This document shows, piece after piece, positions 432-61,446 of a stretch of 64,000 nt of DNA. The stretch is from Leucoraja ocellata (Eukaryota): contig JAWMAR010000026.1 of the NCBI GenBank assembly GCA_036785375.1, forward strand, positions 7,874,001-7,938,000. Direction: 5' to 3'. The notes under the pieces were generated by a model that saw only the letters and a list, made by a program, of their open reading frames with translations, was not told the DNA's origin and ran no database searches. Within the stretch, counting starts at the first letter, position 1. Each line of letters starts with the position of its first letter. Position numbers and translations under genes: made by a program.

Positions 432-968
432 CCCACACAACTAATGTCGATCCGGTTCCGTTGCCAACTAAAGTGCCCCGGCGGGTGATGGTACAATAAT
501 ATACTCCGGCATCCTGTCGGCTCACATTGGCTATTTTCAGGAAGCCACTGAATTTAGTGCTGACGCCGGAAATCGTTCTCCCGTCAGGGTCTGGGATGAA
601 AAAAGTATTTTCACCCTGTTTCCACCAATGTACGCTTACGCTGGGCCCTTCACGAAAGAAGGGAAGAGAGCAGTGAAACGAAGCATGTTGGCCCGTCGAG
701 ACATTTACTGCTTGAGGAAATTGATTTACTTCGTCTGCAGTTTCCCCAGAGCCTAAAGGAAAGAAAAACAGGCCAGATTAGGAATATTTCACCCCAGAAG
801 GTTAAACGCAAGAGCAGGGCTAAATGCAAATGGAAATAAAGACACGCATTAAAGAAACCTTGAATAGATGTAGGTTTTAGTCGGTATAAACGGTTTATGG
901 GGATGCCATGTACCTGTGAAAATTATCCCCCAAAAAGAGAAACAGCGAAGTGCAATACTGGACAACAT
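432..968 (-). CDS. Gene A (partial): VJ-type IgSF receptor, leader exon 914-968 plus VJ exon 432-752; remaining exons lie left of the window
   Basis: Leader [18 protein letters not shown] (55 nt, GT donor). The 321-nt phase-1/1 exon reads [106 protein letters not shown], flanked by a pyrimidine tract plus AG and by GTAAGT. Canonical C, W, DxGxYYC and a J-like G-strand are present. Confidence 0.9.
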
Positions 969-1705
969 TCTGCAGCAAGTGATCACAGGGCGTGTGGAGC
1001 AGTGAACGTATCTGAAGGTTGAATTGTCAGACGATGAAGCGCGTCACTCCTTCTGTGACTGCAGCGCGGCTCATGTCGATGTGGCGAGACTTAAGTTTAC
1101 TTGCATTGCTGTCAACAGCGGCACAATCTGCTGTGGACTTTCACTGAATGAAGAGATAGCAATACACCAAACAAATATAACACAAGCTATGATGACGACA
1201 TTTAAACGCTAATCCCCATTTTTGAAATTCCCCTGCTCTCCATACTGAATTTAGCTTGATTTTCCGCACAGGATGAAGAGAAAAGTCCCATTTTGCTCAG
1301 TTAGTCTCTGCAAAAACATCGGTACACTGTTGTGCAATGATAGCGGATGTTTGCATAATTTCAGCAGAAAAATCTGCGCAATCATTTCAGATAAGATTGG
1401 TGAGACCCATTGGTCTATAGTTTAGCAAAGAAATAGATAATACATACTTAAAGTTCATAACAGAGGGATGTATTCGCCATTCAATAGAGATTGCAGGTGA
1501 AACTGCGTCGGGTTTAACAGGAAACAACCATAAATTGCTTCACCGCTGCTTCTGAGGCATTCGTTCTTCTGTTGTCGGCGTTTCTGCTTTCGCCACCACC
1601 GAAAAGCTCTCAGTGTTACGTCGGTTTTGTGAAACGGTTTTGTATTATTCAGTGAGAAAATCCATAATCGACGAGGATGGCGGTGGGCGGGCACTGTGAA
1701 ACAGG

Positions 1706-5912: not shown

Positions 5913-5957
5913 ATATCTGCCCATCCCATTGCCTGCTCGCCTACTTCCGTTATGTTC

Positions 5958-6767
5958 ATTATCCATTTTGGTGGCAAAAACAGGAAAGCAGACTATTATC
6001 TAAATGGTGGCTGATTGGGAAAGGGGGAGATGCAGCGAGACCTGGGTGTCATGGTACACCAGTCATTGAAGGTAGGCATGCAGGTGCAGCAGGCAGTAGA
6101 GAAAGCGAATGGTATGTTAGCTTTCATTGCAAAAGGATTTGAGTATAGGAGCAGGGAGGTTCTACTGCAGTTGTACAGGGTCTTGGTGAGACCACACCTG
6201 GAGTATTGCGTACAGTTTTGGTCTCCAAATCTGAGGAAGGACATTATTGCCATAGAGAGAGTGCAGAGACGGTTCACCAGACGGATTCCTGGGATGTCAG
6301 GACTGTCTTATGAAGAAAGACTGGATAGACTTGGTTTATACTCTCTAGAATTTAGGAGATTGAGAGGGGATCTTATAGAAACTTACAAAATTCTTAAGGG
6401 GTTGGACAGGCTAGATGCAGGAAGATTGTTCCCGATGTTAGGGAAGTCCAGGACAAGGGGTCACAGCTTAAGGATAAGGGGAAATCCTTTAAAACCGAGA
6501 TGAGAAGAACTTTTTTCACACAGAGAGTGGTGAATCTCTGGAACTCTCTGCCACAGAGGGTAGTTGAGGCCAGTTAATTGGCTATATTTAAGAGGGAGTT
6601 AGATGTGGCCCTTGTGGCTAAGGGGATCAGGGGGTATGGAGAGAAGGCAGGTACGGGATACTGAGTTGGATGATCAGCCGTGATCATATTGAATGGCGGT
6701 GCAGGCTCGAAGGGCCGAATGGCCTATTCCTGCACCTAATTTCTATGTTTCTATGTTTCTATGTTTC
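5958..6767 (+). mobile_element. 5'-truncated CR1 LINE
   Basis: ORF2 C-terminus ([19 protein letters not shown]) and (TTTCTATG)n tail. Confidence 0.92.
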
Positions 6768-8953: not shown

Positions 8954-9988
8954 TCATTTTTTCTTCGATTTGGCCCCATCTGTTTTCGAGAATCCATTCA
9001 GCTCCTCAGAGGCAGAAATCAGCTTCTGACTGGTTTTCACTAGTTTAATCTGTGAATACAATGTTTACGAAAAGGTCATTATTTATAGAAGAAAGCCACT
9101 TAAAAAAAAAAAAACACGTTTACTGTTCCGAATGACTTGCAACAACCCACAACCTACCTCTGCGTATGTGGTTCTTTCCTCCGTGCCTTTCATATTTGAA
9201 ACCATCTTTGACTTGGATAAATCTAATTCTGCATATGAGCAGAACTCATCATTTTCTTTTCCCGTTCGCTGCAAAATAATGTTTTATTCATATGTATCAC
9301 TCCTTATATGCAATTGAATTCGGATAGTGAATGCACAAGGGCAATTTCTCAAAAGAGTAAAAAAAATGCCATGGCAGCATGCCGAAAATCTTTACACGTT
9401 TGACTAATTTTATCAATGACATAACGTTTTCTTTTAAAACGCTGGAACATTTTGGGTCCTGCTTGTTAATCGATTTGAGCTCATCCTAATTGTTTCTGTG
9501 TTGTACGACTCCGGAATCACGTAGTACCCACACAGAATCATGCCATCCCGCCCACCGGGCTATGCTGATCTTTACGGCCTTGTACATTAATACCACTTGC
9601 TCTTATTCCCCACCTTATTCCCCATCTATTTACCTTGGTATCCTAAAGATTTTCGTACATAGAAATTGCATTTACCTCCATCGTCTGCTCTTGCTGTGCT
9701 TTTCAGGTCTCAACTGCTCCTTCTACAAGAACGACTGAATTCACTTCATTCTAAAACGTTCATCTTAATTAAAAGGAACCCACAATTGACAAAAAAATTG
9801 TAGTTCAAAACTAGGATGTCAGAGCTGTTCAAGGTGCATAAATAAATCCAATCGATATTCATGCGATATAGTTACAGGTTACTGTACTTGAGTGGAGAGC
9901 GTTAATGCCATAGGTTGAAATAACTCGTAAAAATCTTAGCTTACCGTGTCTTCAGCAATGTTTAAGGCGTTCGCCTGCCGTCCATTCC
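8954..9988 (-). CDS. Gene B cytoplasmic exons (9945-9988, 9158-9268, 8954-9049) with CSYAEL and TTYAEI motifs
   Basis: [15 protein letters not shown] | [37 protein letters not shown] | [31 protein letters not shown]; all junctions GT/AG and in frame. Confidence 0.8.
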
Positions 9989-12900: not shown

Positions 12901-15900
12901 TGAATAAAGGGTGAAAGTTACAAAGAATCGTTGGTCACTTCTAAATGATTTCAAATACGTAAAGTCCGCATTGAACTAGCGTGTTGAGAGTGTAAAGCCT
13001 GTGGGCGCTGAATATAATTGGAACACCTTACGTTTTCTCAGAATGTTTCACAGCATATGCTGTTAATGCCTTGAATAAACCGACTTGTTTGAGAAACTCA
13101 CCACTAATCAATATTCTTGGTGTATGTCCCATTCTGCGCCGTAATTAAGGAGGGCAATTCACAGACGTGAAAGCTAGATTCAGGGTATAGGTCAGCACAT
13201 AATTCCCTCCATCACGACGTTGCCATAAAGTGGAGTATAACCCTAACCCACTTATGACCATTTTAAAAACACACGAAAAAGAATAAATACAAGCCGATTA
13301 ATTAGATGCTCACGTTTACTTCTCTTGATGTGTCGACACACCATCGTAATGATAAGCAGAAGAATAAATATAATTCCACCCGTTGCGCATCCATAAATAA
13401 GAAAATAGGTCGAATTATTCTCTGTAAAATAAAAGAATGAAAAACATATAACTAGAATTAACTGCCATTTCCAGAACAAGACAGATTAATTGTTGTCCCC
13501 GACCACTGGACCGTATAATTACCTTAAATTGCCCTAAGATTCTGCTCAACATCGTCACGGTTGGATTACGTACATTCTAGCTCAGAATGTCTTTCTGGGC
13601 ACAATTTGTCTAAATCACTAAAACATTTCGAAATAATTTTGCTCTATTTGAAAATTCCAACTACTTACATAGTATTAGTCTTAAATCATTCTGATTTGCC
13701 TACATCTGTGACGCAAACATCCGATAACACATTTGATAGTAGGGCTACTATATTTGCAGTTTATCTTCAAAGTGATTGTTATTCTATAGAGCATTGAGCA
13801 TAGAATAGTACAGCACGGGAACGGGCCAATCCGGCCGCAATATTTGTGCTAAAGATGCCGTCAAAAACCGAACACATCTCCCTGTACATAATCCATATTC
13901 CTCTAGTGCCTGTACTTCCATGTACCTCCAACACCACCACTGGCAAAGCACTTCAGATCTCCCTTAAGATCTCCCTTTTCAACTATATATTTAGCCAAGT
14001 ATTCTCCTGATCTATCCTCCTATTACTATATTCATTCGCAAGAGGTACTGGAAGAACTCTCCATTAAACAACTTCAGGGATCTTGCTCCTTAAACGTTTC
14101 CAAAGTCCAAAGTCAATGCACATCCACACTTCCCGATTGTGCTACTACTTTGGCCATTGGACACCAAACGTCTTTTTCGAAAGCGATCAATATTGGTCAC
14201 ACGATGAAACAAGCTATCCATAGCGCCGAAAGCACCGCGGATGCTGCACAGCGAATCCATCCTAAATACCAGATGCTCAAGAACTTAAGTCGGACGCTGA
14301 TGTTTAATGCATTTCCTGAAGGAATGGCCGCGAGCGCCATTAGACTTGTTGCTGGTCTCCCACAAAGCGCAGGATAAACATTGCACGTGCCCATCTCTCC
14401 TGATACGTATTGTACTTAAATTTATTTAATACTCTAAATGGAACAACCAAGTCGGTTAAGGGCTTTATCCGCTCCAACTACAATTTAGTATAATCTGAAA
14501 TCCACGCAGGGCTTAATTAGGAAAGGGGAATAGATTATGAAAGAAAACTGGCAGGGAACATAAAAACTGACTGCAAAAGCTTTTATAGATATGTGAAGAG
14601 AAAAAGATTGGTTAAAACAAATGTAGGTCTCTTGCAATCAGAAACGGGTGAATTGATGATGGGGAACAAGGACATGGCAGGCCAATTGAATAACTACTTT
14701 GGTTCTGTCTTCACAAAGGAAGACAGAAAGAATCTGCCGGAAATAGCAGGGGATCGGGGGTCAAATGAGATGGAGGAACTGAGTGAAATCCAGGTTAGGC
14801 GGGAAGTGGTGTTAGGTAAATTGAATGGATGAAAGGCCGATAAATCACCAGGGCCAGATAAGCTGCATCCCAGAGTGCTTAAGGAAGTAGCCCCAGAAAT
14901 AGTAGATGCATTAGTGATAATTTTTCAAAACTCTTTAGATTCTGGAGTAGTTCCTGAGGATTGGAGGGTATCTAATGTAACCCCACTTTTTAAAAAAGGG
15001 ATGGAGAGAGAAAACTGGGAATTACAGACCAGTTAGTCTAACATCGGCAGTGGGGAAAACGCTAGAGTCAGTCATTAAAGATGTGATAGCAGCATATTTG
15101 GAAAGTGGTGAAATCATTGGACAAAGTCAGCATGGATTTATGAAAGATAAATCATGTCTGACGAATCTTATATAATCTTTCGAGGATGTAACTAGTAGAG
15201 TGGATAAGGGGGAACCAGTGGATGTGATATATATGGACTTTCAGAAGGCTTTCGACAAAGTCCCACATAAGAGATTAGTATGCAAACTTAACGCACACGG
15301 TATTGGGGGTTCAGTATTGATGTGGATAGAGAACTGGCTGGCAGACAGTAAGTAAAGAGTAGGAGTAAACGTTTGCTTTTCAGAATGGCAGACAGTGACT
15401 AGTAGGGTACCGCAAGGCTCAGTGCTGGGACCCCAGCTATTTACAATATATATTAATGATTTGGACGAGGGAATTGAATGCAACATCTCAGGTTTGCGGA
15501 TGACACGAAGCTGGGTGGGCAGTGTTAGCTGCGAGAGGATGCTAGGGGACTGCAAGGTGACTTGGATGGGTTGGGTGAGTGGGCAAATGCATGGCAGATG
15601 CAGTATAATGTGGATAAATGTGAGGTTATCCACTTTGGTGGCAAGAACAGGAAAGTAGATTATTATCTGAATGGTGGCCGATTAGGAAAAGGGGAGATGC
15701 AACGAGACCTGGGTGTCATGGTACACCAGTCATTGAACGTAGGCAAGCAGGTGCAGCAGGCAGTGAAGAAAGCGAATGGTAAGTTAGCATTCATAGCAAA
15801 AGGATTTGAGTATAGGAGCAGGGAGGTTCTACTGCAGTTGTACAGGGCCTTGGTGAGACCACACCTGGAGTATTGCGTACAGTTTTGGTCTCCTAATCTG

Positions 15901-18900
15901 AGGAAAGACATTCTTGTCATAGATGGAGTACAGAGAAGGTTCACCAGACCGATTCCTAGGATGGTAGGACTTTCATATGAAGAAAGACTGGATAGACTCG
16001 GCTTGTATTCGCTAGAATTTGGAAGATTGAGGTGGATCTTATAGAAGCTGACAAAATTCTTAAAGGGATGGACAGGCTAGATGCACGAAGATTGTTCCTG
16101 ATGTTGGGGAAGTCCAGAACAAGGGGTCATAGTTTAAGGATAAGGGGGAAATCTTTTAGTACCGAGATGAGAAAACTATTTTTCACACAGAGAGTGGTGA
16201 ATCTGTGGAATTCTCTGCCACAGAAAGAAGTTGAGGCCAGTTCATTGGCTATATTTAAGAGGGATTCGCGATGTGGCCCTTGTGGCTAAAGGGATCAGGG
16301 GGTATGGGGAGAAGGCAGGTACAGGATACTGAGTGGGATGATCAGCCATGATCACATTGAATGGCGGTGCAGGCTCGAAGGGCCGAATAGCCTACTCCTG
16401 CACCTATTTTCCATGTTTCTATGTTTAACAATACTTTTTACAATACTTTTGCAACATAGCAATCAACCTCTCCATCGAAGCCACGTCGCTCTCCAAACAC
16501 GACTATCTGAATCCGCTACAATCGAACCTTCTAATCCTTTCTACGTTACCTGCTTTGGAATCCGGAACATGATACGTTGCAGTCAGTGGAGTAGGAAGAG
16601 TGAGGTGCGCCACTTGGCATGTATAGATCGACCCGCCCTGGAGTGTCCTTGTTTCCTTTAAATGACTGGAAACTTCATATAATCCAATCATAGTCAGTTT
16701 TACCGTTGTATGTATGCCCACGAAAATCTCAATGCCATTTCGGTACCAAGTAAGGTTAAGTGATCTCGGGTAAAATTCATCCGCTTTACACAAGAGATTC
16801 AATGTGGTGGAGTTTTGATCAGGCAGTTCGGAGATTCTGAGCTGAGCTGGCGGAACTGCAAATGTAAGACAGAAAATGTATTTGTGATCAGGAAAACTAC
16901 TACACGGGCATAACTATGTTGTACAATACTGGTCGGCGACCTCATAATTACACGGTTATGGTGCATGAACGTTCAGGATTAGCATTATTTCGGCAGTTTT
17001 TTCGGATATCAACAACATAAATCGTAGGTGGACAAAAATGCTGGAGAAACTCAACGGGTGAGGCAGCATCCAACGTCATCTATAGGTGACGTTTCGGGTC
17101 GAGACCCTTCTTCAGACTGATGTGGGGGTGTGGGGGGGGGGGGGGGGGAAGAAGAAAGGAAGAGGCGGATACAGAGGCTGTGGGAGAGCTGGGAAGGGGA
17201 TGGGGAAGGGGGAGAAAGCAAGGAATACCTGAAATTGAGAAGTCAATGTTCATACCTATGGGGTGTAAACTACCCAAGCGAAATATGAGATCCTGCTCCT
17301 CCAATTTGCGGTGGGACTCACGATGGCCATGGAGGAGGCCCAGACAGAAAGGTCGGATTCAGAATGGGAGGGGTAGTTGCAGTGCTGATCAGGTTGGTTA
17401 ATGTGAACTGAGTGGAGGTGGAGGGCGAAGCGATCGCCAAACCTGCGATTGGCCTCACCGATGTAAAGCATTTGACTCCTGGAACAACGGACGGAATAGA
17501 TGAAGTTGGAGGAGGTGCTGGTGAACCTCTGCCTCAACTGGAAGGACTGATTTGGTCCTTCGATGAAGTTGGGGGGGGGGGGGGGGGGGGGGGGGGTGGT
17601 AAAGCGACAAGTGTAGCATTTCCTGCAGTTTCAAGGGAAGAGTGTGGGAAGGCGCGAATTGACCAGGGCATTACGGAGGGAGCGGTCGCTGCAGCAAGCC
17701 AAAAGGGGAGAAGATTGGAAGATGTGTCCAGTGGTGGGATCCCATTGGAGGTGGCGAAAATGTCAGAGGATTACCTGTTGCACGTGCCGGTTGGTAGGGG
17801 GGAGGGGGGGGGGAGAGGTGAGGACAAGGGGGACACTGTCCTTGTTATGAGTGGTGGGTTGGAGAGTGTGAGCGGAGCTACGGGATATGGAGGAGACCCT
17901 GGTGAGAGCCTCATCTATAGTCGAAGACGGGAACGCACGTTTCCTAAAGAATGAGGACATCTCCGATGTCATGGTTTGGAACACCTTATCCTGGGTGCAG
18001 ATGCAGGAAGTGGAAGTAGGGGATAGAGTCCTTACAGAAAGCAGGTTGGGAAGAAGTGTAGTCCAGATAACCATGGGAATCAGTGGGTTTGTAGTAAATG
18101 TCGGCCAGTAGTTCGCTGCCTGCGTGGAGATAATGAGGTCTAGAAACGGTAGGGAGATGTCGGAAATTGTCCAGGTGAATTTGAGTGCCGGATGAAAGTT
18201 CGTGGTGAAAAGGATGAAGTCAGTGAGTTCTGCATGGGTTAAAAATAAAAGCCTTAATGAGCAAGTTGACAGCAAACATCTGAGAAGAATGAAAACTTTT
18301 TTTAGCGCTTCCAATCGTTTCCAATCGAATCTTATAGAATTTTTCCAGGATGTAACTAGTAGCGTGGATAGGGGAGAACCAGTGGATGTGGTGTATCTGG
18401 ACTTCCAGAAGGTTTTCGACAAGGTCCCACATAAGAGATTTGTATACAAACTTAAAGCACATGGCATTGGGGGTTCAGTATTGATGTGGATAGAGAACTG
18501 GCTGGCAAACAGGAAGCAAAGAGTAGGAGTAAACGGGTCCTTTTCACAATGGCAGGCAGTGACTAGTGAGGTACCGCAAAAGCTCAGTGCTGGGACCCCA
18601 GCTATTTACAATATATATTAATGATCTGGATGAGGGAATTGAAGGCAATATCTCCACGTTTGCGGATGACACTAAGCTGGGGGGCAGTGTTAGCTGTGAA
18701 CGGATGCTAGGAGACTGCAAGGTGACTTGGATAGGCTGGGTGAGTGGGCAAATGTTTGGCAGATGCAGTATAATGTGGATAAATGTGAGGTTATCCATTT
18801 TGGTGGCAAAAAGGGGAAAGCAGACTATTATCTAAATGGTGGCCGATTGGGAAAGGGGGAGATGCAGCGAGACCTGGGTGTCATGGTACAGCAGTCATTG

Positions 18901-20874
18901 AAGGTAGGCATGCAGGTGCAGCAGGCAGTAAAGAAAGCGAATGGTATGTTGGCTTTCATAGCAAAAGGATTTGAGTATAGGAGCAGGGAGGTTCTACTGC
19001 AGTTGTACAGGGTCTTGGTGAGACCGCACCTCGAGTATTGCGTGCAGTTTTGGTCTCCAAATCTGAGGAAGGACATTATTGCCATAGAGGGAGTGCAGAG
19101 AAGGTTCACCAGACTGACTCCTGGGATGTCAGGACTGTCTTATGAAGAAAGACTGGATAGACTTGGTTTATACTCTCTAGAATTTAGGAGATTGAGAGGG
19201 GATCTTATAGAAACTTACAAAATTCTTAAGGGGTTGGACAGGCTAGATGCAGGAAGATTGTTCCCGATGTTGGGGAAGTCCAGGACAAGGGGCACAGCTT
19301 AAGGATAAGGGGGGAATCCTTTAAAACCGAGATGAGGAGAACTTTTTTTCACACAGAGAGTGGTGAATCTCTGGAACTCTCTGCCACAGAGGGTAGTTGA
19401 GGCCAGTTCATTGGCTATAGTTAAGAGGGAGTTAGATGTGGCCCTTGTGGCCAAGGGGATCAGAGGGTATGGAGAGAAGGCAGGTACGGGATACTGAGTT
19501 GGATGATCAGCCATGATCATATTGAATGGCGATGCAGGCTCGAAGGGCCGAATGGCCTACTCCTGCACCTAATTTCTATGTTTCTATGTTTCTATGTTTT
19601 TTCGAAGAGTGTGAATTGCTACCTCTGTTGAATTTTTTTTTTACAAAAAATGGTCAGTTTAGCATTAACTAACTCGGCACTTCACGGATTTGCTCTGTTT
19701 TTCAAATCCCAGACTGAAGTTTTCTTGAAGTAAGAACAAATTAATTGGTAAAAAAAACCAACACATAGGAATATCAGGTGTCGCCATTTATGTTTACTCG
19801 GGGGAGATGAGGAGACGTTAGATATCGCTCCGGCAATTTGATACCGCGTTGGATGTAAACAAAATCTAGCTATGGTAGAAGGCCGATAGGGAGGGTCCAT
19901 GATGAGGGGAATGTTGGAAACGGGAGAAGTGACCGTAACAGGGCGGCCGTTGATGCCGCTCCGGCAGTTGGAAATAAAATAGTCCAAAGAAATTACATCC
20001 AACGTTTTGTCCTGCCCCTCCACTCTTCCAGCTTTATACCTCCCACCCAATGCAGATATCAGATCACATTCATCGGCCTCGGAAAGTACTGCTCAATATA
20101 GGAACTGTGTTGGAATCTGTGTTTCGGCGAATTTGGAGCAACGTCCTCATATTAACAGCAAACAAACCAACCAATTAGACAGTCCTGGGATATTAAGACA
20201 CAATATTACATAGAACTTGGGTACTTCGAATGGAAAACCAGGCCACGTTGCTTTCCCGAATTATAGAATTGAATAATAATAGGGTAACATCTCCATATTG
20301 CAGCGCATTTGCTTTTACTGTTACACATACCGAAGACGTTGATTCTGGAGCCAGATCCATTCACAATTTTACTTCCGTGGATACCCACTCCGCAGTAATA
20401 GACTCCAGCATCATCTGCACGGATATTCAATATCTGCAAGGAGGCTGCACCTTGTTTAAAACGAACAAATATCTTCCTACTGTCAGAGGCTGTTTGCAGA
20501 AAGTTCTGTTCGCCAAGTTTCCACCAATAATATTCCACAGGTAGACTATTTTGCGATAGTCCAATAAGGCAATATAGGGTGATATTTGAATGTAAGATCA
20601 CGTGTTTGCTCGTCGGAGATTGTTTGACTTGGTAGTGAGCATCAACGGCAACTGTAGCAGAAGAAAATCAAAAATTATCGCATAACAGACGAGGCCAGAC
20701 ACAATTAATCGCACTTTTGAAAGATGCGTGAATGTGGATGTGCGGTCGATATACGGGTGTTGATCAAAGAGGGTGTAGGTCAGTAAGAAGATAAAAACAA
20801 AAGAAAAGTCGAGAAATACCTGCATTTATAATCAGGAGCGACGAAAACAACAGAACCACATCCCGAAAAGGCAT
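8954..20874 (-). CDS. Gene B: complete VJ-C1-TM-cytoplasmic IgSF receptor (346 aa), inhibitory type; exons 20820-20874, 20331-20651, 16550-16855, 13314-13421, 9945-9988, 9158-9268, 8954-9049
   Basis: Seven exons with GT/AG boundaries and compatible phases sum to 1041 nt, open to TGA at 8954-8956. Exon sizes match paralogues (55-nt leader, 306-nt C1, 44-nt first cytoplasmic exon). Confidence 0.85.
10748..11012 (-). mobile_element. CR1 3' end
   Basis: (CATAGAAA)n tail and the reverse complement of the CR1 3' UTR. Confidence 0.9.
12172..12480 (+). mobile_element. V-SINE (HE1-like)
   Basis: TGGCGCAACGG...GATTCGATCC head; CTCCGGTTTCCTCCCACACCCCAAAGAC core. Confidence 0.8.
13314..13421 (-). CDS. 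Gene B transmembrane exon (uncharged TM)
   Basis: [36 protein letters not shown]; TTTTACAG acceptor and GTGAGC donor (an alternative GTAAAC donor 6 nt earlier has the same phase). Confidence 0.82.
14507..16425 (+). mobile_element. CR1 LINE, about 1.9 kb, 5'-truncated and disrupted, in the gene B C1-TM intron
   Basis: Continuous RT homology with stops and frameshifts; ends in TTTCTATG. Confidence 0.93.
16550..16855 (-). CDS. Gene B C1-set Ig exon
   Basis: [23 protein letters not shown]...GLYEVSSHL...[13 protein letters not shown] carries the C1 motifs CxxxxFYP, W and YxCxVxH; 306 nt, phase 1/1. Confidence 0.92.
17025..18236 (-). mobile_element. Penelope-like element (RT end, GIY-YIG, terminal repeat)
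   Basis: [25 protein letters not shown]; [35 protein letters not shown]; terminal hammerhead motif. Confidence 0.85.
17088..17115 (-). ncRNA. Minimal type I hammerhead ribozyme motif in Penelope terminus
   Basis: Reverse strand CTGAAGA-A-GGGTC-TC-GACCC-GAAAC-GTC: conserved CUGANGA and GAAA cores, stem II and a GUC cleavage triplet. Confidence 0.7.
18327..19598 (+). mobile_element. CR1 LINE, 5'-truncated, in the gene B V-C1 intron
   Basis: [23 protein letters not shown]2 C-terminus and (TTTCTATG)n. Confidence 0.93.
20331..20651 (-). CDS. Gene B VJ exon
   Basis: [30 protein letters not shown]...[11 protein letters not shown]...[36 protein letters not shown]; acceptor CTACAG, donor GTATGT; 321 nt. 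Confidence 0.9.
20820..20874 (-). CDS. Gene B leader exon
   Basis: [18 protein letters not shown] plus phase-1 GT donor; 55 nt as in genes A, C and E. Confidence 0.85.
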
Positions 20875-33030: not shown

Positions 33031-33131
33031 CTATATATATATATGTGCCATCACGATGATAACGATGAATATTAAAATGAATACTGCACCTCGGATACTT
33101 CCAGCGATTAGAGCAGATACACCCTCGACAG
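33031..33131 (-). CDS. Gene C transmembrane exon with Arg (CGA at 33091-33093), ending in TAG
   Basis: CCCACAG acceptor; hydrophobic stretch alignable to gene B TM; TAG at 33031-33033 directly followed by a GTATGT donor. Confidence 0.8.
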
Positions 33132-36100: not shown

Positions 36101-36705
36101 TGGAAGACAATAGTATGTTCCGGCGTCCGAGACCGTGACATTCAGCAGGTGAAGGTAGGCGCCTCCTGCCCGTATAGTGAAGATTTTCCTGCTATCTTCT
36201 TTCAGGAAGCCTTTATTTCCATCTTTCCACCAGAAAACCTCCAGGTTTGACAGATTTACATTGAAGGGGAAGGGACACCGACAGGTAAAATTTATGCCAA
36301 TGATCACCGTATTCTGAACAACATTCGATATCGTCTTGCCCGACCTGTTCTCAGCAGCTGCCAATAGATGGTGCACAATCCAGTTTAGTCATTGATATAT
36401 AGCAATGGAAATGTAACAATGCAGGCAAAAATCTTATTGCACTCAGCCCAAAAACTTACAATGAATTGAACCGAATTATTATGCCCGCTTTTTGTGTCCA
36501 CGTAAAGGTTTCGTAAATTACACTCCTTTCCAGAACTCATACAACAGCAAAGACATAATGGACAATTCGGCATGACATTATAAGGTACAACTATCATATC
36601 TGCGTAAATTAAAGACCCATAAATAAAAAGCAATAGAAGCCCTAATTTACCCGCATTCAAAATTCCAAGGAAATACATCGTCCAAGGTGACACTTTCAGA
36701 AACAT
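33031..36705 (-). CDS. Gene C: VJ-C1-TM IgSF receptor (257 aa) with Arg in TM and no tail; exons 36651-36705, 36046-36357, 35024-35329, 33031-33131
   Basis: Leader MFLKVSPWTMYFLGILNA; V ...FTCRCPF...VFWWKDGNKGFL...LLNVTVSDAGTYYC...; C1 MQCRTAAFYPKEFNLTWHTNG...GLYEVISFL...YTCKIIHRSM; TM AVEGVSALIAGSIRGAVFILIFIVIIVMAHIYI*. Total 774 nt in frame with GT/AG junctions. Confidence 0.82.
33515..35010. mobile_element. Degenerate Penelope fragments (33515-34330 on -, about 34700-35010 on +) with an intervening CR1 tail (34560-34690, -)
   Basis: EQHLIFHL...GMNVEF and [12 protein letters not shown] on -; the + segment encodes VVTLNNFSFDSSHFLQVK. Confidence 0.6.
35024..35329 (-). CDS. Gene C C1-set exon
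   Basis: 306 nt, same size as gene B C1; CRTAAFYP, W and YTCKIIH motifs. Confidence 0.9.
36046..36357 (-). CDS. Gene C VJ exon
   Basis: 312 nt, phase 1/1; DAGTYYC; GGCAG acceptor, GTGAGC donor. Confidence 0.88.
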
Positions 36706-39764: not shown

Positions 39765-40060
39765 ATTATATGATAGGTTCTTGACTGGTTTCATTTAAAA
39801 CCGTTTAACCCGCAAGTTTGTGGAATGTGGAAGTGCATTGTACTGTCAGCACGCTCACATTCAGCTACAACGGTTGCGCCCCCTACCCGTAATGTTCTGC
39901 TATCTCTTCTCAGGAAGTTCTTATTTCCGTCTTTTTGCCAGTGCACCGTTACGTTGGGTTGATTAAGATCGAAGAGGAATGGAAATTGGGGTGTAACGTT
40001 CATTTTGTTGAGCTGCGTCTTCTGAGCAGCATCGGATGTCGCTTTCCCCCATAGGTCCAG
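39765..40060 (-). pseudogene. V pseudo-exon (D), paralogue of the gene C V domain; 5' boundary approximate
   Basis: FPFLFDLNQPNVTVHWQKDGNKNFLRRDSRTLRVGGA aligns with gene C FPFNVNLSNLEVFWWKDGNKGFLKEDSRKIFTIRAGGA. Both cysteines are lost, frameshifts and stops follow, and a GTGAGG donor remains at 39759-39764. Confidence 0.72.

Positions 40061-40251: not shown

Positions 40252-40253
<2 letters not shown>

Positions 40254-40314
<61 letters not shown>
40254..40314. repeat. (CAT)n microsatellite
   Basis: About 20 perfect units. Confidence 0.95.
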
Positions 40315-49790: not shown

Positions 49791-49792
<2 letters not shown>

Positions 49793-51712: not shown

Positions 51713-54700
51713 ATGTTTATGTTTGCTGTGCTGCTGTGTCTCTCGATCCTGCACATGAGTTACACAGGTTAATATGTTTCTTTCTATTAAATGAAAATAA
51801 CAGGGAAAAGTCAATCCGCGAAAAGTATAAGATGCACAACTTTCAAACTTCTACCCTATTGTACTTTTAATTTTCGGTCGATCTATTTCAGCCAATTGGA
51901 TTTTTATTAATCAGTTCTTTGTCATTTCACCAGTTTAATGTTTGTTTTTTAATTCTGACAGTATCTGACCGGCCCTTCTCGCCCAGTGTGCGTCCCGATG
52001 AGGTAACGAAGATGAAAGGTGAAAATGTATCCTTATACTGTGCTTTCCAAAATGTCGGTCAGAATGCACTGCTGGATGTATACTGGAAGAGAGAGGGTCA
52101 AGAAGAAACTTTGGCTCACACCGCAAACAGGAGGATGACAATGAACAATGTCCTGAAGGGATTTGCCGAATTACATCTGTTAGACGTGGGCTTCCGTGAC
52201 TCCGGGATCTATTATTGCAGTGTGAGAGACGGGAAAGGAAAGAGTTCCAAAGGCAATGGCACGAGGATTATTGTACACGGTGAGTCTTACTTGATGTTTC
52301 GTTTCCCAATAGAAACACAGAAATATGGTGTGCTACAGAGTTATAAAGTAGCAATAAACGAACCCTTTCTCAGTCTGTACTAGAGGTTTTGCTGCAATTA
52401 AGTAATTGTTTTTTTTGTGATTGTTGGACCATGAGATCTTTGGACAATCATTATTCTTTAATTTCCTATCATTTAGTTATCATTTTTATGTCTGGGGTTA
52501 ATTTTCTAGGCGGGACCTCAACTGCATCCAGCGAAAGGAGTATGGATTAAGATTGCAGATGTTAGTCAATGAAATGGAAACCATCATATGTTAGCGAGTA
52601 TTGTAGCTGCAGTCGTGTAGTCAAAAAAACATTGAGTTCGAGTCGGGACCTGTGATATCCAGATGGTTGAACGTTCTAGGCAGATCACGAATTGAGCTCT
52701 TTTGCAGAATATCCATGTTTGACCATTTATGTAGCTATTTCTAGTCCATCCAATAAATGTTAACAAAACGTATGATGTTGGAAGAAACATTTGGTGAATA
52801 GCGAGCGTGATATATTCTAACCGCAATCTTGTGTAAAAGACTAGTCTACCGTGATTTTAGGAATTCATAGTTTCAAAGAAAATGAATGATAAAATACGAG
52901 TCACAACATATCTGCGACTACGGAAATTAGTTTCTGCCGAGAACGTTATAGCGGAAGTAACAAAAGTTCACGATGAAAATGATTAAAGAAATTCAGAGTT
53001 ATCGTAAGGAAGAATTGGTCGGGTGCGTGGTGGCGTATTAGTGTGGGTGGAAGACAAAAAAAAATACTTTATAAACGGGGGGAAATCTGAGAATAATGCA
53101 ACGTCACAAAATATGTAAACAGAGGAGATTAAAGTAGTACCGGAATTCAAATAATTAAATTGCAAATTGAGAATATTAATCAAAACGTTAACCGTCATTT
53201 TACGTTGAGTTTCATTGGAACTCAGCAGAGCGTCGAGTGGGAGAACAGAAGCTTCATTCTGAATGATAATTACACGTCATCGTCATAGTCGATTTCTGGG
53301 TGGAAATATGCCAGAAAGACTTCACCTAATTGAGTACGCTCTTCCCTCCGCACAGCGCACGATTTCAATCACATATCAGCAACTACTGAGTACACACAGA
53401 CACGCTACTATACCTTGTCCAGTTTAAGTACCGTGACATGTATTGCGAACACGACAAATACCAAAAGCATCCAATCAATTTCGAAACTTATAATTGCTCA
53501 AAAAAGAATTCAACAACTCCTAAACATAGAACGTGAATAGGCCTTTGGGCCCACAATTTCAGTGCCGAATATGATGCCAAGCTAAATTAATATCCGCTCT
53601 TTGCGAGACATATCGGTCCATTCCCTGCATTTGCCTATTTGAAAATATCTAAGATATCCCTATTGTATCTCCCTCTGCAACTACGCATGATGTAGTTAAG
53701 CTGCAAGGGTATAGATCAAATTTACGAGGATGTTGCCACGACGCGAGGGTCTGAGCTATAGGGAGAGCCTGAGCAGGTTATGACTTGATTCCTTGCAGCG
53801 CAGGAGGGTAAGGGTTGATCTTATTGAGGTTTATATGAGCATGACAGGAATAAATCGGGTATATGCATCGTCTTTTACCCAGAGCAGTGGAATCAAGACC
53901 TTGTACACTAAACATTTCACCACATCAAATTACAATAACACAGGAAAAGAAGTGTTCGTCGCAGTTGAAAGATTAATTGTGTGCGAGCTACCAGGAAATC
54001 GAAATTGTCAGTCCCATGCACCCTTTCTTTCAAGGAACGAAATTCCTTTCCACCAGGTGTTTATTTAATGTATATTTCGCGGTCTTGATTGGCTCTGATT
54101 CCAGCACATTTCCGATCGCTACTTCAGGTTCAAGTTCAAGTTACATTTATTGTCACATGCACCAATTGGTGCAGTGGGATTTGAGTTAACATACAACCAT
54201 ACAAATAAAAAGAACACAATACAAGATAGAATTTAACATGAACATCCCCCACGGCGGAATCAACGTTTCCCATTGTGAGGGAAGGCAATAAAGTTCAGTC
54301 ATCTTCCTCTTTGTTCACCCGTGGTCGGGGCCTTTGTGCCCGCCGCAGTCGCCGCTACGGACGGCCCGATGTACAGGCCCTGGATCTGGATCTGGATGTA
54401 ATACGCTGAAAAGCTCTAGATAGGAGCATACCTCAGCACTATGATGGTGGTGGACGTGCTAGTCCAGATGGAGATGCTTTTGGAGTTGCATCTTTGTATG
54501 TGCTGATGTTTTGGAGATCTCTGATGCTGGCTGGTAGGGTATTCCAATCCCTTGCTGTCTTGAAGAAATAAAAGTTAAAAAGTGCTAATGAAGTGCCGTG
54601 TGGAAAGAAATAATTTCCAGGTTAGTAGCTTCTAGTTGACATGCCTATGGGTGCTTGGATTAATTATATGTGGTCCACCATCTTTAAGTCAATAGTGGTA

Positions 54701-57700: not shown

Positions 57701-60700
57701 CCTCTACTCTGACACATCATTACCTGTAATTAGTTCATCAACGCTGGTGTAGTCTGCAAATTTAAAGGTTGAGTTGGAACTGTTCCGGGTACACATCCAT
57801 GGGTATAGAATGAGCACACAGTCTTGAGGTGCCACTCTGCTGATAGTTATCGAGGAGGAAGTGTGAGCAATGTGACAAGCTTCACGACATTGTTCAGTTC
57901 CAATCTGGCCTTTTGTGTACATGCTGTTAGAACATTATCGATTATCTCCAGAGATTTCTTCTTTCCTCTGTGTTATTTTCCCTTATAGATGTAGCTTCTT
58001 CTTCTTGCGTATGGCGTGCATAGCCTAAAGTTGTAGGACAACTTGTTCTATTTGATATTATGCACGCCAGGTTGAATGTATTCGTCGAAACAGGGCGCAC
58101 CACGTGAAGGTTGCAATCTCCCACCCCCTAGATGTGGCAAGCTGATGTCAAAGACCAATTGGATCACTGCCAATACATCACTCATGCTACTTCCACAAAA
58201 ATCTTCCTGCTCCCTCTCATCCCACGCTTGCTGCAGTCAAGATGTAATTCTAAGTTTCATTTGTCAGGATCCTCCTTGTACGTTCAGTTTTTGGGAACAA
58301 ATTACAGTTTCCTTTGGGTGTCATTTACCACAGGTTCAGTGTGAAGCCATTTCTCCACTTCACCTTGTTGAGTCATTAAAGGCTACATATGGAGCAGTAT
58401 TTTCGTGCTATTGTATTATATCTGTACCACATAGAATCATAGAAACATAGAAAATAGGTGCAGTAGGCCATTCGGCCCTTTGAGCCTGCACCGCCATTCA
58501 ATATGATCATGGCTGATCATCCAACTCAGTACCCTGTACCTGCCTTCTCTCCATACCCCCGATCCCTTTAGCCACAAGGGCCACATCTAACTCCCTCTTA
58601 AATATAGCCAATGAACTGGCCTCAACTACCTTCTGTGGCAGAGAATTCCAGAGACTCACCACTCTCTGTGTGAAAAATGTTTTCATCATAACGGTCCTAA
58701 AAGATTTCACCCGTATCCTTAAACTGTGACCCCTTGTTCTGGACTTCCCCAATATCGGGAACAATCTTCCTTCATCTAGCCTGTCCAACCCCTTAAGAAT
58801 TTTGTAAGTTTCTATAAGATCCCCCCTCAATCTTCTAAATTCTAGCGAGTACAAGCCGAGTCTATCCAGTCTATCCATAATACCAATCCAATATTTGTGC
58901 CTCTGCACGGTGTTGCAGCGGTAGAGTTGCAGCCTTACAGCGCTGACAGCGCCAGAGGCCCACGTTCGATCCTAGCTACAGGTGCTTGTCTGTATGGAGT
59001 TTGTACATGTTGATAATAAGAGGGCGCCTTCACTTCACCCAGTTATTACATCATTGGAGGGAAGCAATTACGTTGGTTGGCATGATCGTGTAGGAGGTAT
59101 AATTATCCTCATCGTTTTACATAAGCTAATGTGAGAGGTAATGTCTTAATTTATCAATTGTCCATCGTTAGTCCACTTGGGTAGACAACCCTCCTCTAAT
59201 CGATCTGAAAGATTATGATTTACCAGCCAATTTCTGTACGACATCATTCCTAGTTCAGAACTCGGCATAATTCCTAGTTCTGAACTCGACCTATTATTGT
59301 CTATTACCTTTGATCTATTCTTGATCTGATTATTGGTCATAATTTGATATATGTTCCTGAATATATTTGGCATTGGGTTGACACGTGAGGAAGAAATGAA
59401 TTTAGAGGGAAATTAAAGGAAAATGAAAAGCGGAAACTTTGCAGGTTTTCTTCAAGAGGAGCGATGGCGGCAGTTAACTGCTCACCAGTTCTTTGACTTC
59501 ACAACAGAATTAACCGACAGTTAGACTGTGCAGTAAACAACTTTTGTTTTTTGTTAGATACTATACGAAAATATACTATCTACTACATAGGTACCAATTA
59601 TTTCATTAGTCATAACATGCCTTTTGTTTATGACAATCTTATTCAATCTTAATACAAGTCAAAAACAATACAAGGCATCTTGATATTATTCTATCTCTCC
59701 TTTTAGGCGGAACGCGCCACCATCCCTTCTCTGAGCCAATCATAAGCTCCCCATTTACTGCAACGTTTCTACGGTACAAGCGGCAGGGGGCGAGGGTGGT
59801 CTACAGTAACACACTGCTGCGAGAAACCATCTTCCTCATCTGCATCTACCATTTCATGTTTACATTTACCATCCACCCTTCAACACATTCCTAGACAAGA
59901 GATACTACGTCGAATCTTACTTTGCCCATTCCCACGAACCTTTTCTGCAGCTGGACAACGAGAGATGCCAATTGTCACATCCAAACACCCTTTCATTATC
60001 TTGTTCAATTCCAATCAAAATTAAGTAAGAAAGAATAATAATATTTTCTTCCACGCCATCCTGGAGGACGTAAACAAACATTTCAGCCCAACTTTGCAAT
60101 GCTGACCAAGATGTCCCACCGTAATTGGCCCATATCCCTCAAAACCTTTGCCCCCTTGTATCCGTCCAAATGTCTGGTAAAAGCACCTGCCTCAGTGACC
60201 TCACCTGGCACCTAATTCCATATACGCACCAGCATCTGCATGAAAAGGATGCCCTTAGGTTCTTGGTAAGTGTTCCCCTCTCGCCTTCCCATGAATTCAG
60301 TCCACAAAATACAACATTCCACCATCACCCTTTGCTTCCTTACACGGAGCCATTTCTCTACCCAGTGGTGAGCTCTTCTTGGACTACATGGAATCTAATG
60401 TTCCAGAGCAACATGTGGAACTTTGTCGAAGTCATTTCTGGTCCATACAGACAACGTCAACTACTTTGTCCAAATCATCCTTTTTGGTTGCTTTAAAATA
60501 AATCGGATTCGTAACACACGTTGTTTCACATATACAACCATGATGACAATCCACGATCAGCTCCTTTCTAATCAAATGCTTACATATTTTATCCCTCTGA
60601 ATCCTTTCCAGTGGCCTTCCTACCACAGACTGGTTTACAGTTCCCAGGTTTTTCCTTGCAGCCCTTCTCAAATATAGCCGCAATATTAGCCATCCTCCAG

Positions 60701-61446
60701 TCTTCACATAGGTCTTTTCATGCTATTTCTCTGTGTATACACACTCTTAATTTGATGTTTTGTTTTAATCAATTCCCGACGTCTCTAGATGTATTTCATT
60801 ATAAGACACAACCGATGTGTTAACTCACATCACCACATTCTAAATTAACTGCCCCCCCCCCCCCCCACCCCATGCCCGCCACCCATGTATCCTATTGGCT
60901 GTGACCACAGTAGATGAAACATACCATCTTTCCATATCCTCATCCCCATGAATCTTTTTTTTTCATTTGGCTTCCACTTCTTTGCTTCGGCTTCTCGTCC
61001 TTCGACGCCACGTCCGCACACGATTTCCCAACAACGTAGTTAAAATATTTTACTCTTAAAGGAATGCTCAAGAAGTTATGGTATTATCCATTCCGAAAGC
61101 GATTATATTGTCTTCTAAATAAACATATAGGGGTGCTAACTCCTTTATCTTAAATTGTTTGCAGTGTCACCGACGCCTTTGAAGATTAAACAGATGAACA
61201 CTCCTTCCCTGGCCTTAAACTGTACAACTGCTCCGTTTTTCCCGGCGGACTGTGAACTTACCTGGTATAAAGATGACCACGAAATCACTTCTGGAATAAG
61301 TACTACTAAAATACGGAACGACGAGGGATTATACCTTGTTTTCAGCTTACTGCAAGTGGTGGATAGCCGATCGGTTTATAGTTGCAACGTTTCTCACGCC
61401 ACCCTCCTGGTTCCGACCGTTGAAACTCACAGAATTCTTGAAATGG
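51713..61446 (+). CDS. Gene E (partial): VJ-C1 IgSF receptor; exons 51713-51767, 51962-52279, 61165-61446; TM and tail exons not found in the window
   Basis: Leader MFMFAVLLCLSILHMSYT (55 nt); V ...VSLYCAF...VYWKREG...LHLLDVGFRDSGIYYCSVRDGKGKSSKGNGTRIIVH; C1 SPTPLKIKQMNTPSLALNCTTAPFFPADCELTWYKDD...GLYLVFSLL...YSCNVSHATL. All junctions phase 1, GT/AG. Confidence 0.85.
51962..52279 (+). CDS. Gene E VJ exon
   Basis: 318 nt; DSGIYYC and GNGTRIIV J-like strand; GTGAGT donor. Confidence 0.9.
54381..56150 (-). mobile_element. Divergent CR1-clade LINE with (ATCCAG)n tail, inserted in a GC-rich repeat (about 54125-56570)
   Basis: KASGPDSISPRILK...LPRDWRQANITALFK...NYRLVSLTSVCCKLLE; KAFDTVPH; KYLGVTLSENMKWNKH; the tail reads ATCCAGATCCAGATCCAG on -. 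Confidence 0.8.
57996..58128 (-). mobile_element. 133-bp non-autonomous retroelement (Ingi/Vingi-like ends) with (GAA)n tail and target-site duplication
   Basis: Flanking direct repeat TAGATGTAGC (57986-57995) / TAGATGTGGC (58129-58138); 3' end GCCATACGCAAGAAGAAGAA. Confidence 0.7.
58074..58127 (-). ncRNA. HDV-like ribozyme fold (slightly decayed copy)
   Basis: GGGGUGG(P1)-GA-GAUUGCA(P2)-ACC(P3)-UUCACGU(L3)-GGU(P3')-GCGCCCU(P1')-GUUUCGA-CGAA(J4/2)-UACAUUC(P2'). Confidence 0.62.
58438..58876 (-). mobile_element. CR1 3' end
   Basis: ORF 58507-58908 is the ORF2 C-terminus; octamer tail. Confidence 0.9.
61165..61446 (+). CDS. Gene E C1-set exon
   Basis: 282 nt; CTTAPFFP, W and YSCNVSH; TTTGCAG acceptor, GTATGA donor. 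Confidence 0.88.

Follow-up and report, generated by a model that had tools for sequence, protein, structure and literature searches.

Introduction

The ectodomain of mammalian NKp30 (NCR3), a receptor that binds B7H6, is one V domain lacking any C domain, and the J-like motif of human NKp30 is of the GNGTR type. In sharks, the NCR3 family is reportedly multigene and divergent, and it is said to comprise eight divergent MHC-linked subtypes. SIRP receptors combine a V domain of VJ type with C1 domains and a four-tyrosine tail, and their activating partners have a basic residue in the transmembrane segment (TM). NITRs are paired inhibitory/activating families and are not known to have a C1-set domain. 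Among the rearranging receptors, FR2 of Ig and TCR holds an interface Gln.

SIRP, NKp30, PRARP of chicken, and NITR of teleosts are grouped as joined-VJ IgSF receptors in the relevant passage of PMC11599192. In PMC12227049 and a second paper of the field, NKp30/NCR3 is termed a 'VJ' gene and UrIg is presented as a novel 'VJ-C1' gene. UrIg and UrIg2 of cartilaginous fishes have a non-rearranging VJ exon, canonical split leader, and C1-type domains (PMC12227049; PDB 9dmx). As described there, each is one gene; the C domains number three in UrIg, which lacks a TM, and nine to eleven in UrIg2, which has one. Eight nurse-shark NCR3 accessions, MT914154–MT914161, are given in the methods of a Sci Adv 2025 paper, and the white-shark MHC is placed on chromosome 19 in a figure legend.

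Results

Cluster layout

The window, i.e., the whole analysed stretch of 64,000 bases from the skate Leucoraja ocellata, is without any N. A cluster of immune-receptor genes is confirmed on it from position 432 to position 61446, which are exactly the ends of the V exon of gene A and of the C1 exon of gene E. In each of the four genes A, B, C, and E there is one leader exon of 55 nt and one V exon reading in frame into a J-like strand, and B, C, and E have one C1-set exon apiece. All Ig exons are of phase 1-1 with AG/GT flanks. The four V exons are open, have a length divisible by 3, AG before, GT after, and phase 1, and they span from FR1 through YYC to the J-like strand. This strand is GNGTRIIV in E and a ten-residue segment in B; another segment of ten residues was likewise recorded. 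The leaders are hydrophobic ATG...GT exons of exactly 55 nt, located 160–300 nt upstream of the V exon. Counting leader, V, C1, and TM exons, 13 were located in A, B, C, and E, and every one is open with intact splice flanks.

In mutual tblastn, the V exons matched one another with pairwise E values of 1e-8 to 1e-15 (no match was reported for the A–E pair) and the C1 exons with 5e-12 to 8e-20. Beyond five V loci and three C1 loci, tblastn gave no further one in the window, every other match having E ≥ 0.18. LINE fragments are strewn through the cluster. Not a single RSS-like heptamer-spacer-nonamer site was found in the 64-kb window, and no V exon had a heptamer at a distance of up to 150 nt. 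The J-like strand of E can be aligned with J of the mu and gamma chains of TCR, and the best single-domain PDB matches for the V domains of B and E are TCR delta and TCR alpha.

A preliminary description of this DNA had proposed a VJ-C1-TM layout, non-rearranging single VJ exons, for genes B, C, and E a C1-set exon, and a shared W(W)K.G...R signature. The layout, with a split leader, is borne out by exon anatomy and Pfam domains and the non-rearranging exons by the lack of RSS-like sites in the window and the alignment of the E strand to TCR J; the C1-set exons of B, C, and E score 44.3, 37.5, and 50.3 bits, respectively, against a Pfam cut-off of 21 bits (26 bits for V-set), and W, G, and R of the signature are invariant in alignment A2. 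The shared 55-nt leader and single VJ exon were recovered for A, B, C, and E, but not for D, a pseudo-exon without leader that had been counted among them.

Individual genes

Gene A lies on the minus strand. Its leader exon (914..968; 55 nt, 18 codons plus 1 nt) is the one hydrophobic ATG..GT exon of 55 nt in the 400 nt preceding the V exon of A. In length it equals the N-terminus of the Scyliorhinus A-lineage model P0099, with which it also shares the last four residues (IIFT). The VJ exon (432..752, 321 nt) scores 41 bits for Pfam V-set. The remainder of the gene is beyond the window, which stops 431 nt downstream of this exon, and the C1 of A is therefore not assessable in the window. P0053 and P0058, both of which continue into C1-TM, have V domains 95–96% identical to that of A. 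For the RefSeq models XP_032892405 of Amblyraja radiata and XP_055505064 of Leucoraja erinacea, identity to this domain is 95–96%. The orthologues of A are of the long-tail ITIM/ITSM type.

Gene B is on the minus strand as well and has a leader exon at 20820..20874 (55 nt), a VJ exon at 20331..20651 (321 nt, Pfam V-set 36.6 bits), and a C1 exon at 16550..16855 (306 nt). The V exon belongs to a 5-row clade of the V tree (SH-aLRT 99), and the C1 exon clusters with the same four shark proteins in the C1 tree (SH-aLRT 96). The TM exon (13315..13421, donor at 13321 or 13315) is of the inhibitory type and aligns with TM segments of long-tail members. A cytoplasmic exon at 9158..9268 carries the Tyr motifs SYAEL and TTYAE- and matches family tails in tblastn (P0202, E 2e-4). 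The last coding exon, with the stop, is at 8954..9049; it too has a tail match, and Tyr is missing there at the second family ITIM position. Because the TM exon leaves phase 1 by either donor and the next tail exon is in phase 0, at least one small intervening exon was missed. Gene B is predicted to be of inhibitory type. Its inhibitory capacity is uncertain, as the first tail motif has Cys at position -2 and Tyr is lost at the second ITIM. No RNA contigs fell on the exons of B, and two candidate runs cover LINE debris only; these runs are tiny (13–18 million letters) and their tissue is unstated, so their silence means little.

Gene C, on the minus strand, has a leader exon at 36651..36705 (55 nt) and a V exon at 36046..36357 (312 nt) with the degenerate J-like strand GKETREQLIV. 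The V exon scores 21–21.6 bits for Pfam V-set, under the cut-off, and in the V tree it is on a long branch and unplaced. The C1 exon is at 35024..35329 (306 nt). The TM exon (33031..33131) is of the activating type, and the Arg in its TM aligns with the Arg of seven out of eight short-tail homologues; gene C is accordingly classed, on this alignment, as a putative activating gene. The exon is ended by an in-frame TAG that follows a (TA)n run, and C may accordingly be in decay. It was present in no RNA run examined. Downstream of C on the same strand there are two ITIM-type tail exons at about 30665..30637 and 30524..30393 (span 30393..30665) with motifs LAYASL and VIYSGV. They match the tail of P0190 (tblastn, E 3.9e-5) and are either a relic or an alternative 3' end. 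The V pseudo-exon D (minus strand, approximately 39809..40060) is a decayed copy of the V exon of C, with 38% identity over 84 aa (tblastn, E 2e-14). Both Cys, the J-like strand, and the leader are absent from D, and it has no Pfam match.

Gene E is coded on the plus strand, with a leader exon at 51713..51767 (55 nt), a VJ exon at 51962..52279 (318 nt, Pfam V-set 41.8 bits), and a C1 exon at 61165..61446 (282 nt). Its V exon is in an 18-row clade of the V tree (SH-aLRT 100), and its C1 exon is within the E-lineage clade of the C1 tree (SH-aLRT 99). No family-matching TM candidate was present in 61480–64000, and no TM or tail exons of E were found before position 64000. As for gene A, the orthologues are of the long-tail ITIM/ITSM type.

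Relatives in cartilaginous fishes

Sixty-two distinct relatives (48 + 21 database matches) were collected at E ≤ 1e-6 from a collection including GenBank proteins, and all of them come from 17 chondrichthyan species, chimaera included. All 62 are automatic gene models bearing seven kinds of borrowed name. Among the 48 matches, 18 are named SIRP-alpha-like/SIRP-beta-1-like, 12 tapasin-related, 6 Ig lambda, 4 NCR3LG1, 3 MHC II beta, and 1 CD276. In nine out of nine species with several full-length models, all models of one species share a longest contig of equal size. The V domain starts at residue 20–22 in most complete models, which fits the 18-codon leader exon. One C1 domain is present in 61 of the 62 C1-bearing family proteins; the skate model P0053 is the only one with two clean copies (V-C1-C1). 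In the E lineage, models lacking C1 represent splice isoforms of genes with V-C1 (P0139 versus P0184, P0149 versus P0192).

About eight or nine shark clades are found in the V tree. The V and C1 trees are congruent, with B beside the same four shark proteins and E in the E clade in both, and the split codon at the predicted V/C1 joint is Val (B, E) or Ala (C), matching the V/C1 boundary of the homologues; V and C1 exons thus belong together. According to the trees, A, B, and E represent separate old lineages common to skates and sharks. The word 'diversified' in the preliminary description fits these old lineages but not a recent diversification.

At least one [SIVL]xYxx[ILV] motif follows the TM in 29 out of 64 proteins, and 9 of the 64 have Arg in the TM (Gln in one) and a tail of no more than 19 residues. 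In one shark, the inhibitory P0193 and the activating P0200 are identical at 195 of 228 residues (86%). The identity runs through leader, V, and C1, with divergence afterwards.

When the family profile was compared with PDB (3855 matches), UrIg2 was at rank 2 and SIRP-alpha (2wng) at rank 7, and SIRP-gamma was also present. One match stretch of SIRP-alpha 2wng crosses the V/C1 joint. UrIg2 is the top match for the C1 of E by whole-chain E-value, although its best single domain has only 25 bits. By sequence profile, UrIg2 and SIRP-alpha are the nearest solved non-antibody relatives. Human NKp30 is matched along the entire V domain of E, at rank 10 of 123 with an E value of 1.8e-5. NKp30 is absent among the best 60 of 1390 matches for the V domain of A, the best 60 of 244 for that of B, and the best 60 of 1638 for the A2 profile.

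Discussion

The window probably holds part of a tandem cluster of germline-joined IgSF paired receptor genes belonging to a chondrichthyan multigene family. The paired inhibitory/activating character proposed earlier agrees with the two tail classes, the P0193/P0200 pair, and the TM alignments of C and B. Each gene would be built of a split leader, one VJ exon, and one C1-set exon, followed by TM and tail exons. Long-tail ITIM/ITSM members would recruit SHP-type phosphatases, as SIRP-alpha and other ITIM receptors do, and short-tail members with Arg in the TM would pair with a signalling adaptor with acidic TM, as in NKp30 and SIRP-beta. Adaptor, ligand, and signalling are assigned by analogy only; these, as well as the cell type and the expression of the window copies, we infer.

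With TCR and IgL chains, the genes share the split leader, V, J-like strand, one C1 domain, and TM with a basic residue. Unlike in those chains, one exon without RSS encodes V and J-like strand together, the family has ITIM tails, and the FR2 position of the interface Gln of Ig/TCR is not conserved (WWK.G). The family resembles NITR in being paired inhibitory/activating but differs from it by the C1-set domain. Likeness to PRARP and NITR as joined-VJ IgSF receptors is by description only, as given in the relevant passage of PMC11599192.

It is possible, but rather doubtful, that the genes represent, in skate, the shark NCR3 (NKp30) family of Kinlein et al. 2021, with nothing new at family level. 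That paper exists, as cited by title, and the eight nurse-shark accessions in the Sci Adv 2025 methods can be set against the number of shark clades in the V tree. Features in common with NKp30 are V and J-like strand in a single exon and, in the activating form, a TM Arg. The V domain of E matches it in full length. The J-like strand of E also carries its GNGTR motif. Unlike NKp30, B, C, and E have a C1 exon and most members of the family are inhibitory. Moreover, none of the 62 relatives has an NCR3/NKp30 name or originates from nurse shark, NKp30 is missing from the best 60 matches for the V domains of A and B, and two papers of the field (PMC12227049 among them) keep the 'VJ' NCR3 apart from the 'VJ-C1' UrIg. 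The label 'NCR3/SIRP-like' of the preliminary description is consequently right in its NCR3 part for the V domain of E alone, not for A or B or the names of relatives. From the ranks of UrIg2 and SIRP-alpha in the family profile, 'SIRP/UrIg-like' is preferable.

A position of the family as the cartilaginous-fish counterpart (co-orthologues) of SIRP is unlikely. As in SIRP (PDB 2wng, 4i2x), a germline-joined VJ-type V is followed by C1-set domain(s) and TM, and multi-Tyr inhibitory tails occur beside activating short-tail members whose TM holds a basic residue. LTYAxL-type motifs in the tails are similar to those of SIRP-alpha, and P0053 has V-C1-C1. SIRP is also the source of the commonest automatic name (18 of 48), stands at rank 7 in PDB with a stretch across the V/C1 joint, and is counted among joined-VJ IgSF genes in the cited passage of PMC11599192. 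Nevertheless, there is one C1 per gene in the window and in all C1-bearing models except P0053, not two as in SIRP. The activating TM has Arg and not the Lys of SIRP, and relatives at the threshold used come from cartilaginous fish only. Automatic names track the best two-domain SwissProt match, and five other names were assigned as well.

Silent or decaying duplicates, as opposed to working genes, are an improbable explanation of the window copies. In its favour, D is a pseudo-exon, the V domain of C is weak, the J-like strand of C is degenerate, and the stop of C follows the (TA)n run, B has lost a Tyr at the second ITIM position, RNA contigs are missing on B and C is in no RNA run, and LINE fragments riddle the cluster. 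Against it, all 13 exons are open with intact splice flanks and the V domain of A is 95–96% identical to models of two other skates.

With UrIg and UrIg2 of cartilaginous fish, the cluster shares the non-rearranging VJ exon, canonical split leader, and C1-type domains, and with UrIg2 also the TM. It differs from both in having one C1 domain and in being multigene and paired, with many paralogues per species, and ITIM pairing is described for neither of them in the relevant parts of PMC12227049. Novelty was overstated in the preliminary description, because the orthologues are already RefSeq models (XP_032892405, XP_055505064) and the shark NCR3 family, UrIg, UrIg2, and PRARP are known. We suggest only tentatively that the VJ-C1-TM genes may be a chondrichthyan-only family of their own, apart from the V-only NCR3, undescribed as a family, and nearer to UrIg2/SIRP than to NKp30. 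If this is true, dozens of working copies would keep the single-chain layout of TCR/IgL without RAG, namely a split leader, V and J joined in one exon, a single C1 exon, and a basic residue in the TM. The family would then provide natural activating/inhibitory pairs, possibly with a polymorphic CDR3-like loop, and, among living models of the kind of receptor split by the RAG transposon, it would be the most accessible.

Gene structure

The Leucoraja ocellata window holds skate representatives (genes A, B, C and E) of an old family of paired receptors in cartilaginous fish, which are non-rearranging and have the layout VJ-C1-TM. The 64,000 bases contain no N and represent vertebrate DNA rich in LINE/reverse-transcriptase debris. 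A six-frame screen recognized five V-like and three C-like open segments. The same five and three were confirmed by reciprocal tblastn against the whole window, where no further V or C locus was found, all remaining matches having E >= 0.18. In tblastn, the V exons match each other with E of 1e-8 to 1e-15 (the A-E pair was not reported), and the C exons with E of 5e-12 to 8e-20. Exon ends were sought by reading the flanking sequence, limits were then set by script, and database searches were made exon by exon, each singly.

The V exon of A lies at 752..432 on the minus strand and is 321 nt long, as is that of B (20651..20331, minus strand). The V exons of C (36357..36046, minus strand) and E (51962..52279, plus strand) have 312 and 318 nt, respectively. 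C1 exons of 306 nt were located at 16855..16550 in B and at 35329..35024 in C, both on the minus strand, and one of 282 nt at 61165..61446 on the plus strand in E. All seven V and C1 exons have a length that is a multiple of 3, AG before, GT after, and phase 1, which is the classical pattern of Ig-domain exons. Pfam V-set scored 41, 36.6, and 41.8 bits on A, B, and E, respectively (cut-off 26), and 21-21.6 bits on C, under the 26-bit cut-off. C1-set scored 44.3, 37.5, and 50.3 bits on the three C exons, all of which pass the cut-off of 21.

Leaders were searched by a script collecting all hydrophobic ATG...GT mini-exons that leave phase 1 and fall in the 6 kb before each V exon. One leader exon of 55 nt was identified for each of the four genes, 160-300 nt upstream of the V exon: 968..914 (A), 20874..20820 (B), and 36705..36651 (C) on the minus strand, and 51713..51767 (E) on the plus strand. 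In most complete family models of other species the V profile starts at residue 20-22, which gives independent support for a leader of 18 codons and a split codon. The leader of A equals the start of a catshark A-lineage model in length, and their last four residues are identical. The preliminary description had placed a cluster of such receptor genes at 432-61446. These limits are the exact ends of two exons (V of A and C1 of E), and the claimed cluster and gene structures are borne out, with sound exon anatomy, Pfam domains, and leaders.

Each V exon runs unbroken from FR1 via YYC to a J-type G-strand, which is GNGTRIIV in E and degenerate in C. In solved TCR mu and gamma chains, the strand encoded by J aligns with the last 35 residues of the E V exon. 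No RSS heptamer was found inside 150 nt of any V exon, and no heptamer-spacer-nonamer site in the whole 64-kb window. Because the exons are continuous from V to J and the window has no RSS, the V exons are germline-joined and unable to rearrange.

The V pseudo-exon D was ruled out as a fifth gene. It is without both Cys and the J-like strand, no leader was found upstream of it, and it has no Pfam match. It is 38% identical to the V exon of C over 84 aa and is a decayed copy of that exon.

Relatives in cartilaginous fish

A word-indexed search with the V domain of E returned 11 candidates, all of them above E 0.001. Since profile searches went on to reveal relatives, this negative result carries no information. 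When the four V exons were used as a profile in an exhaustive search, 5493 matches were obtained, the best 150 being mostly giant multi-Ig proteins with summed domain scores. Useful were 11 short single-V proteins with one match each over the full profile (109-157 bits), and all are RefSeq models of skates, rays, and sharks. The V domain of A is 95-96% identical to models of Amblyraja radiata and Leucoraja erinacea, both of which continue into C1 and TM; this identity points to a skate near these genera as the source of the window. Family searches were done with a profile of seven full-length members (E <= 1e-10; 48 matches) and a profile of two E-lineage members (E <= 1e-6; 21 matches), together giving 62 distinct proteins. 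The 62 proteins are all of cartilaginous fish (17 species, the chimaera Callorhinchus among them), and no bony vertebrate was among the matches at these thresholds. In each of nine species with several full-length models, the models sit on the same-sized longest contig, which fits clustering of the family genes.

The 48 matches of the seven-member profile bear automatic names only: SIRP-alpha-like (16), tapasin-related-like (12), Ig lambda-like (6), NCR3 ligand 1-like (4), uncharacterised (4), MHC class II beta-like (3), SIRP-beta-1-like (2), and CD276 (1). NCR3 or NKp30 is the name of none of the relatives. The family is thus scattered in public annotation under seven kinds of borrowed name, and comparative studies based on names would miss it. 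It is already present there as unnamed automatic models, so the novelty put forward in the preliminary description was overstated. A literature search revealed no account of a cartilaginous-fish VJ-C1-TM paired family, which is weak evidence of absence, as few subscription journals were covered.

Amblyraja radiata XP_032892405, an orthologue of A, has two near-identical tandem C1 domains (V-C1-C1), a SIRP layout due either to genuine duplication of the exon or to a model that spans two gene copies. The first 68 residues of Leucoraja erinacea XP_055505064 stand in place of the 55-nt leader, are without signal peptide, and map with 92-93% identity to 8738-8782 and 7639-7797 on the minus strand, between B and A. 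This N-terminus probably stems from read-through out of the gene upstream or from faulty construction of the model's 5' end.

Outside cartilaginous fish, the V profile comes closest to receptors of a lizard and turtles (P0122, P0131, P0037, and P0054), in which three to five VJ-type domains with GNGTRVTI-type strands stand in tandem, together with a TM and ITIM tails. Their automatic names are titin-like, pIgR-like, FcRL5 or CD22-like, and they look like another misnamed VJ receptor family. A frog multi-V model, P0057 of a spadefoot toad, is also near the V profile.

Phylogenetic analysis

V and C1 domains were cut by HMM coordinates from 64 family proteins (the 62 matches and two cluster mates); V pieces below 85 profile positions and C1 pieces below 80 were left out. 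The trees, with 63 V rows and 65 C1 rows, were quick IQ-TREE runs on about 100 columns with SH-aLRT support only, and they were computed without outgroups from SIRP, NCR3, UrIg or antigen receptors. Gene A was classified in a clade of 12 rows together with rays and sharks (SH-aLRT 99). Gene B is in a clade of five rows, with support of 99 in the V tree and 96 in the C1 tree and with the identical four shark proteins in both, and gene E is in a clade of 18 rows (100 and 99, respectively). Gene C has a long branch and no supported partner. The agreement of the V and C1 trees indicates that the paired V and C1 exons belong to the same genes, even over the 9-kb intron of E. At the predicted V/C1 joint the split codon gives Val in B and E and Ala in C, like the residue before the PPTPLKI-type C1 start in homologues. 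Two E-lineage models without C1 (P0139 and P0149) have their V domain in common with the V-C1 models P0184 and P0192 and are listed as isoforms; the C1 exon appears to be skipped in some E-lineage transcripts.

Transmembrane types and tails

At least one copy of the [SIVL]xYxx[ILV] motif follows the TM in 29 of the 64 proteins. A short tail of 5-19 residues with a conserved TM Arg was identified in nine, one of which has Gln instead, and the rest are truncated or of unclear tail class. In the shark Heptranchias, the inhibitory P0193 and the short-tailed P0200 are identical at 195 of 228 positions over leader, V, and C1, and diverge from the stalk. Such a pattern is the hallmark of paired receptors. 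By analogy, the ITIM forms would signal through SHP-type phosphatases, and the Arg forms would pair with an adaptor with acidic TM.

Both TM types are represented in the window. The TM exon of C (33131..33031, minus strand) has an Arg early in its hydrophobic stretch, aligned with the Arg of the family, and an in-frame TAG straight after a (TA)n run. The TM exon of B, starting at 13421 on the minus strand, encodes an uncharged membrane stretch followed by a basic stop-transfer stretch, and it aligns with the inhibitory TMs. Cytoplasmic exons of B at 9268..9158 and 9049..8954 (minus strand) are matched by family tails and carry tyrosine motifs. The exon chain of B is incomplete, as the TM exon leaves phase 1 and the first tail exon found begins in phase 0. 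The exons of A downstream of V and the TM and tail exons of E lie outside the window. A "TLYSQI" motif in B was dropped, since its reading frame crosses an intron acceptor.

Beyond the stop of C, ITIM-type exons at about 30665..30637 and at 30524..30393 (minus strand) are matched by family tails. They are open, encode LAYASL and VIYSGV, and lie 2.4 kb past the in-frame stop. These exons may be remnants from a time when C was inhibitory, or they may serve as an alternative 3' end.

Reads, variation, and repeats

No sequencing run recorded as RNA contains gene C; in three DNA runs of a single study, 59-66% of its words are present. For the leader-V-C1 stretch of B (16400-20950), two small runs tentatively taken as RNA give contigs on the LINE part only, at about 17.0-19.7 kb, and none on the B exons, which points neither for nor against expression; these exons are covered by DNA runs. 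In the V exon of B (20331-20651), DNA contigs of two other individuals differ at 13 sites of 321 nt. There are 14 changes, nine residue-changing and five silent, several of them in the CDR3-like loop and the J-like strand. In the C1 exon of B, a 162-nt contig (16653-16814) differs at 0-1 site. The differences in the V exon are due either to allelic polymorphism concentrated on V or to the collapse of a close paralogue.

Introns and spacers are filled by many fragments of one LINE/RT family, at 17000-19700 and as ORFs elsewhere (1732-2349, 6015-6503, 15562-16044, 21968-22994, 31407-32050, and others), and their read depth is very high relative to the exons. Trinucleotide arrays are (TCA) x 23 at 40253-40323, just upstream of D, and (TTA) x 25 at 49717-49792.

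Relationship to known receptors

PDB searches with the V profile and the C1 profile were swamped by summed multi-Ig scores; they give no fair ranking of single domains and are usable for presence and rank only. The full-length family profile had 3855 PDB matches, with an IgA heavy chain at rank 1, UrIg2 at rank 2, and SIRP-alpha at rank 7. SIRP-gamma is also among the matches listed, and the others listed are antibody chains or antibody-derived constructs, save one entry titled "CT3". The best single-domain matches for the V domains of B and E were those of TCR delta and TCR alpha. NKp30 matched the V domain of E over the whole domain (rank 10 of 123, E 1.8e-5), and it is absent from the best 60 PDB matches for A V, B V, and the four-V profile. 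Because of the ranks of UrIg2 and SIRP-alpha, the listing of NKp30 for E V alone, and the TCR-type V matches, "SIRP/UrIg-like with antigen-receptor-type V" appears to suit the family better than "NCR3-like". The preliminary description had read the cluster as NCR3/SIRP-like paired receptors with antigen-receptor-like architecture. The architecture stands (germline-joined VJ, C1, no RSS), as does the pairing, with two tail classes and the Heptranchias pair; the pointer to NCR3 was too narrow.

A shark NCR3 family with eight subtypes, linked to the MHC, was reportedly described by Kinlein et al. 2021. That the window genes are members of this family seems rather unlikely to us. The shark clades in our tree number about eight or nine, and the NKp30 match of E V also speaks for membership. 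However, the searched collection includes GenBank proteins, yet none of the 62 relatives is from nurse shark or named NCR3, and in the wording of the field NCR3 is VJ only. According to PMC10751288 (MBE 2023), NKp30 and PRARP are "VJ genes", UrIg is a novel "VJ-C1" gene, and the white-shark MHC is on chromosome 19. PMC11599192 counts CD79, NITR, SIRP, CD8, NKp30, and PRARP among the IgSF members with joined VJ. In PMC12227049 (Sci Adv 2025), the nurse-shark NCR3 genes are MT914154-MT914161. The latter paper describes UrIg as secreted, with VJ and three C1 domains, and UrIg2 as VJ with nine to eleven C1 domains and TM, both with a split leader, whereas the present family is VJ-C1-TM.

The present family, which may be either identical to the published shark NCR3 family or separate from it, is a large, old, TM-anchored VJ-C1 group with clear activating/inhibitory pairs throughout the cartilaginous fish. 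In the case of identity, the window contributes no more than further skate members; as a group separate from the shark NCR3 genes already published, it would deserve its own name.
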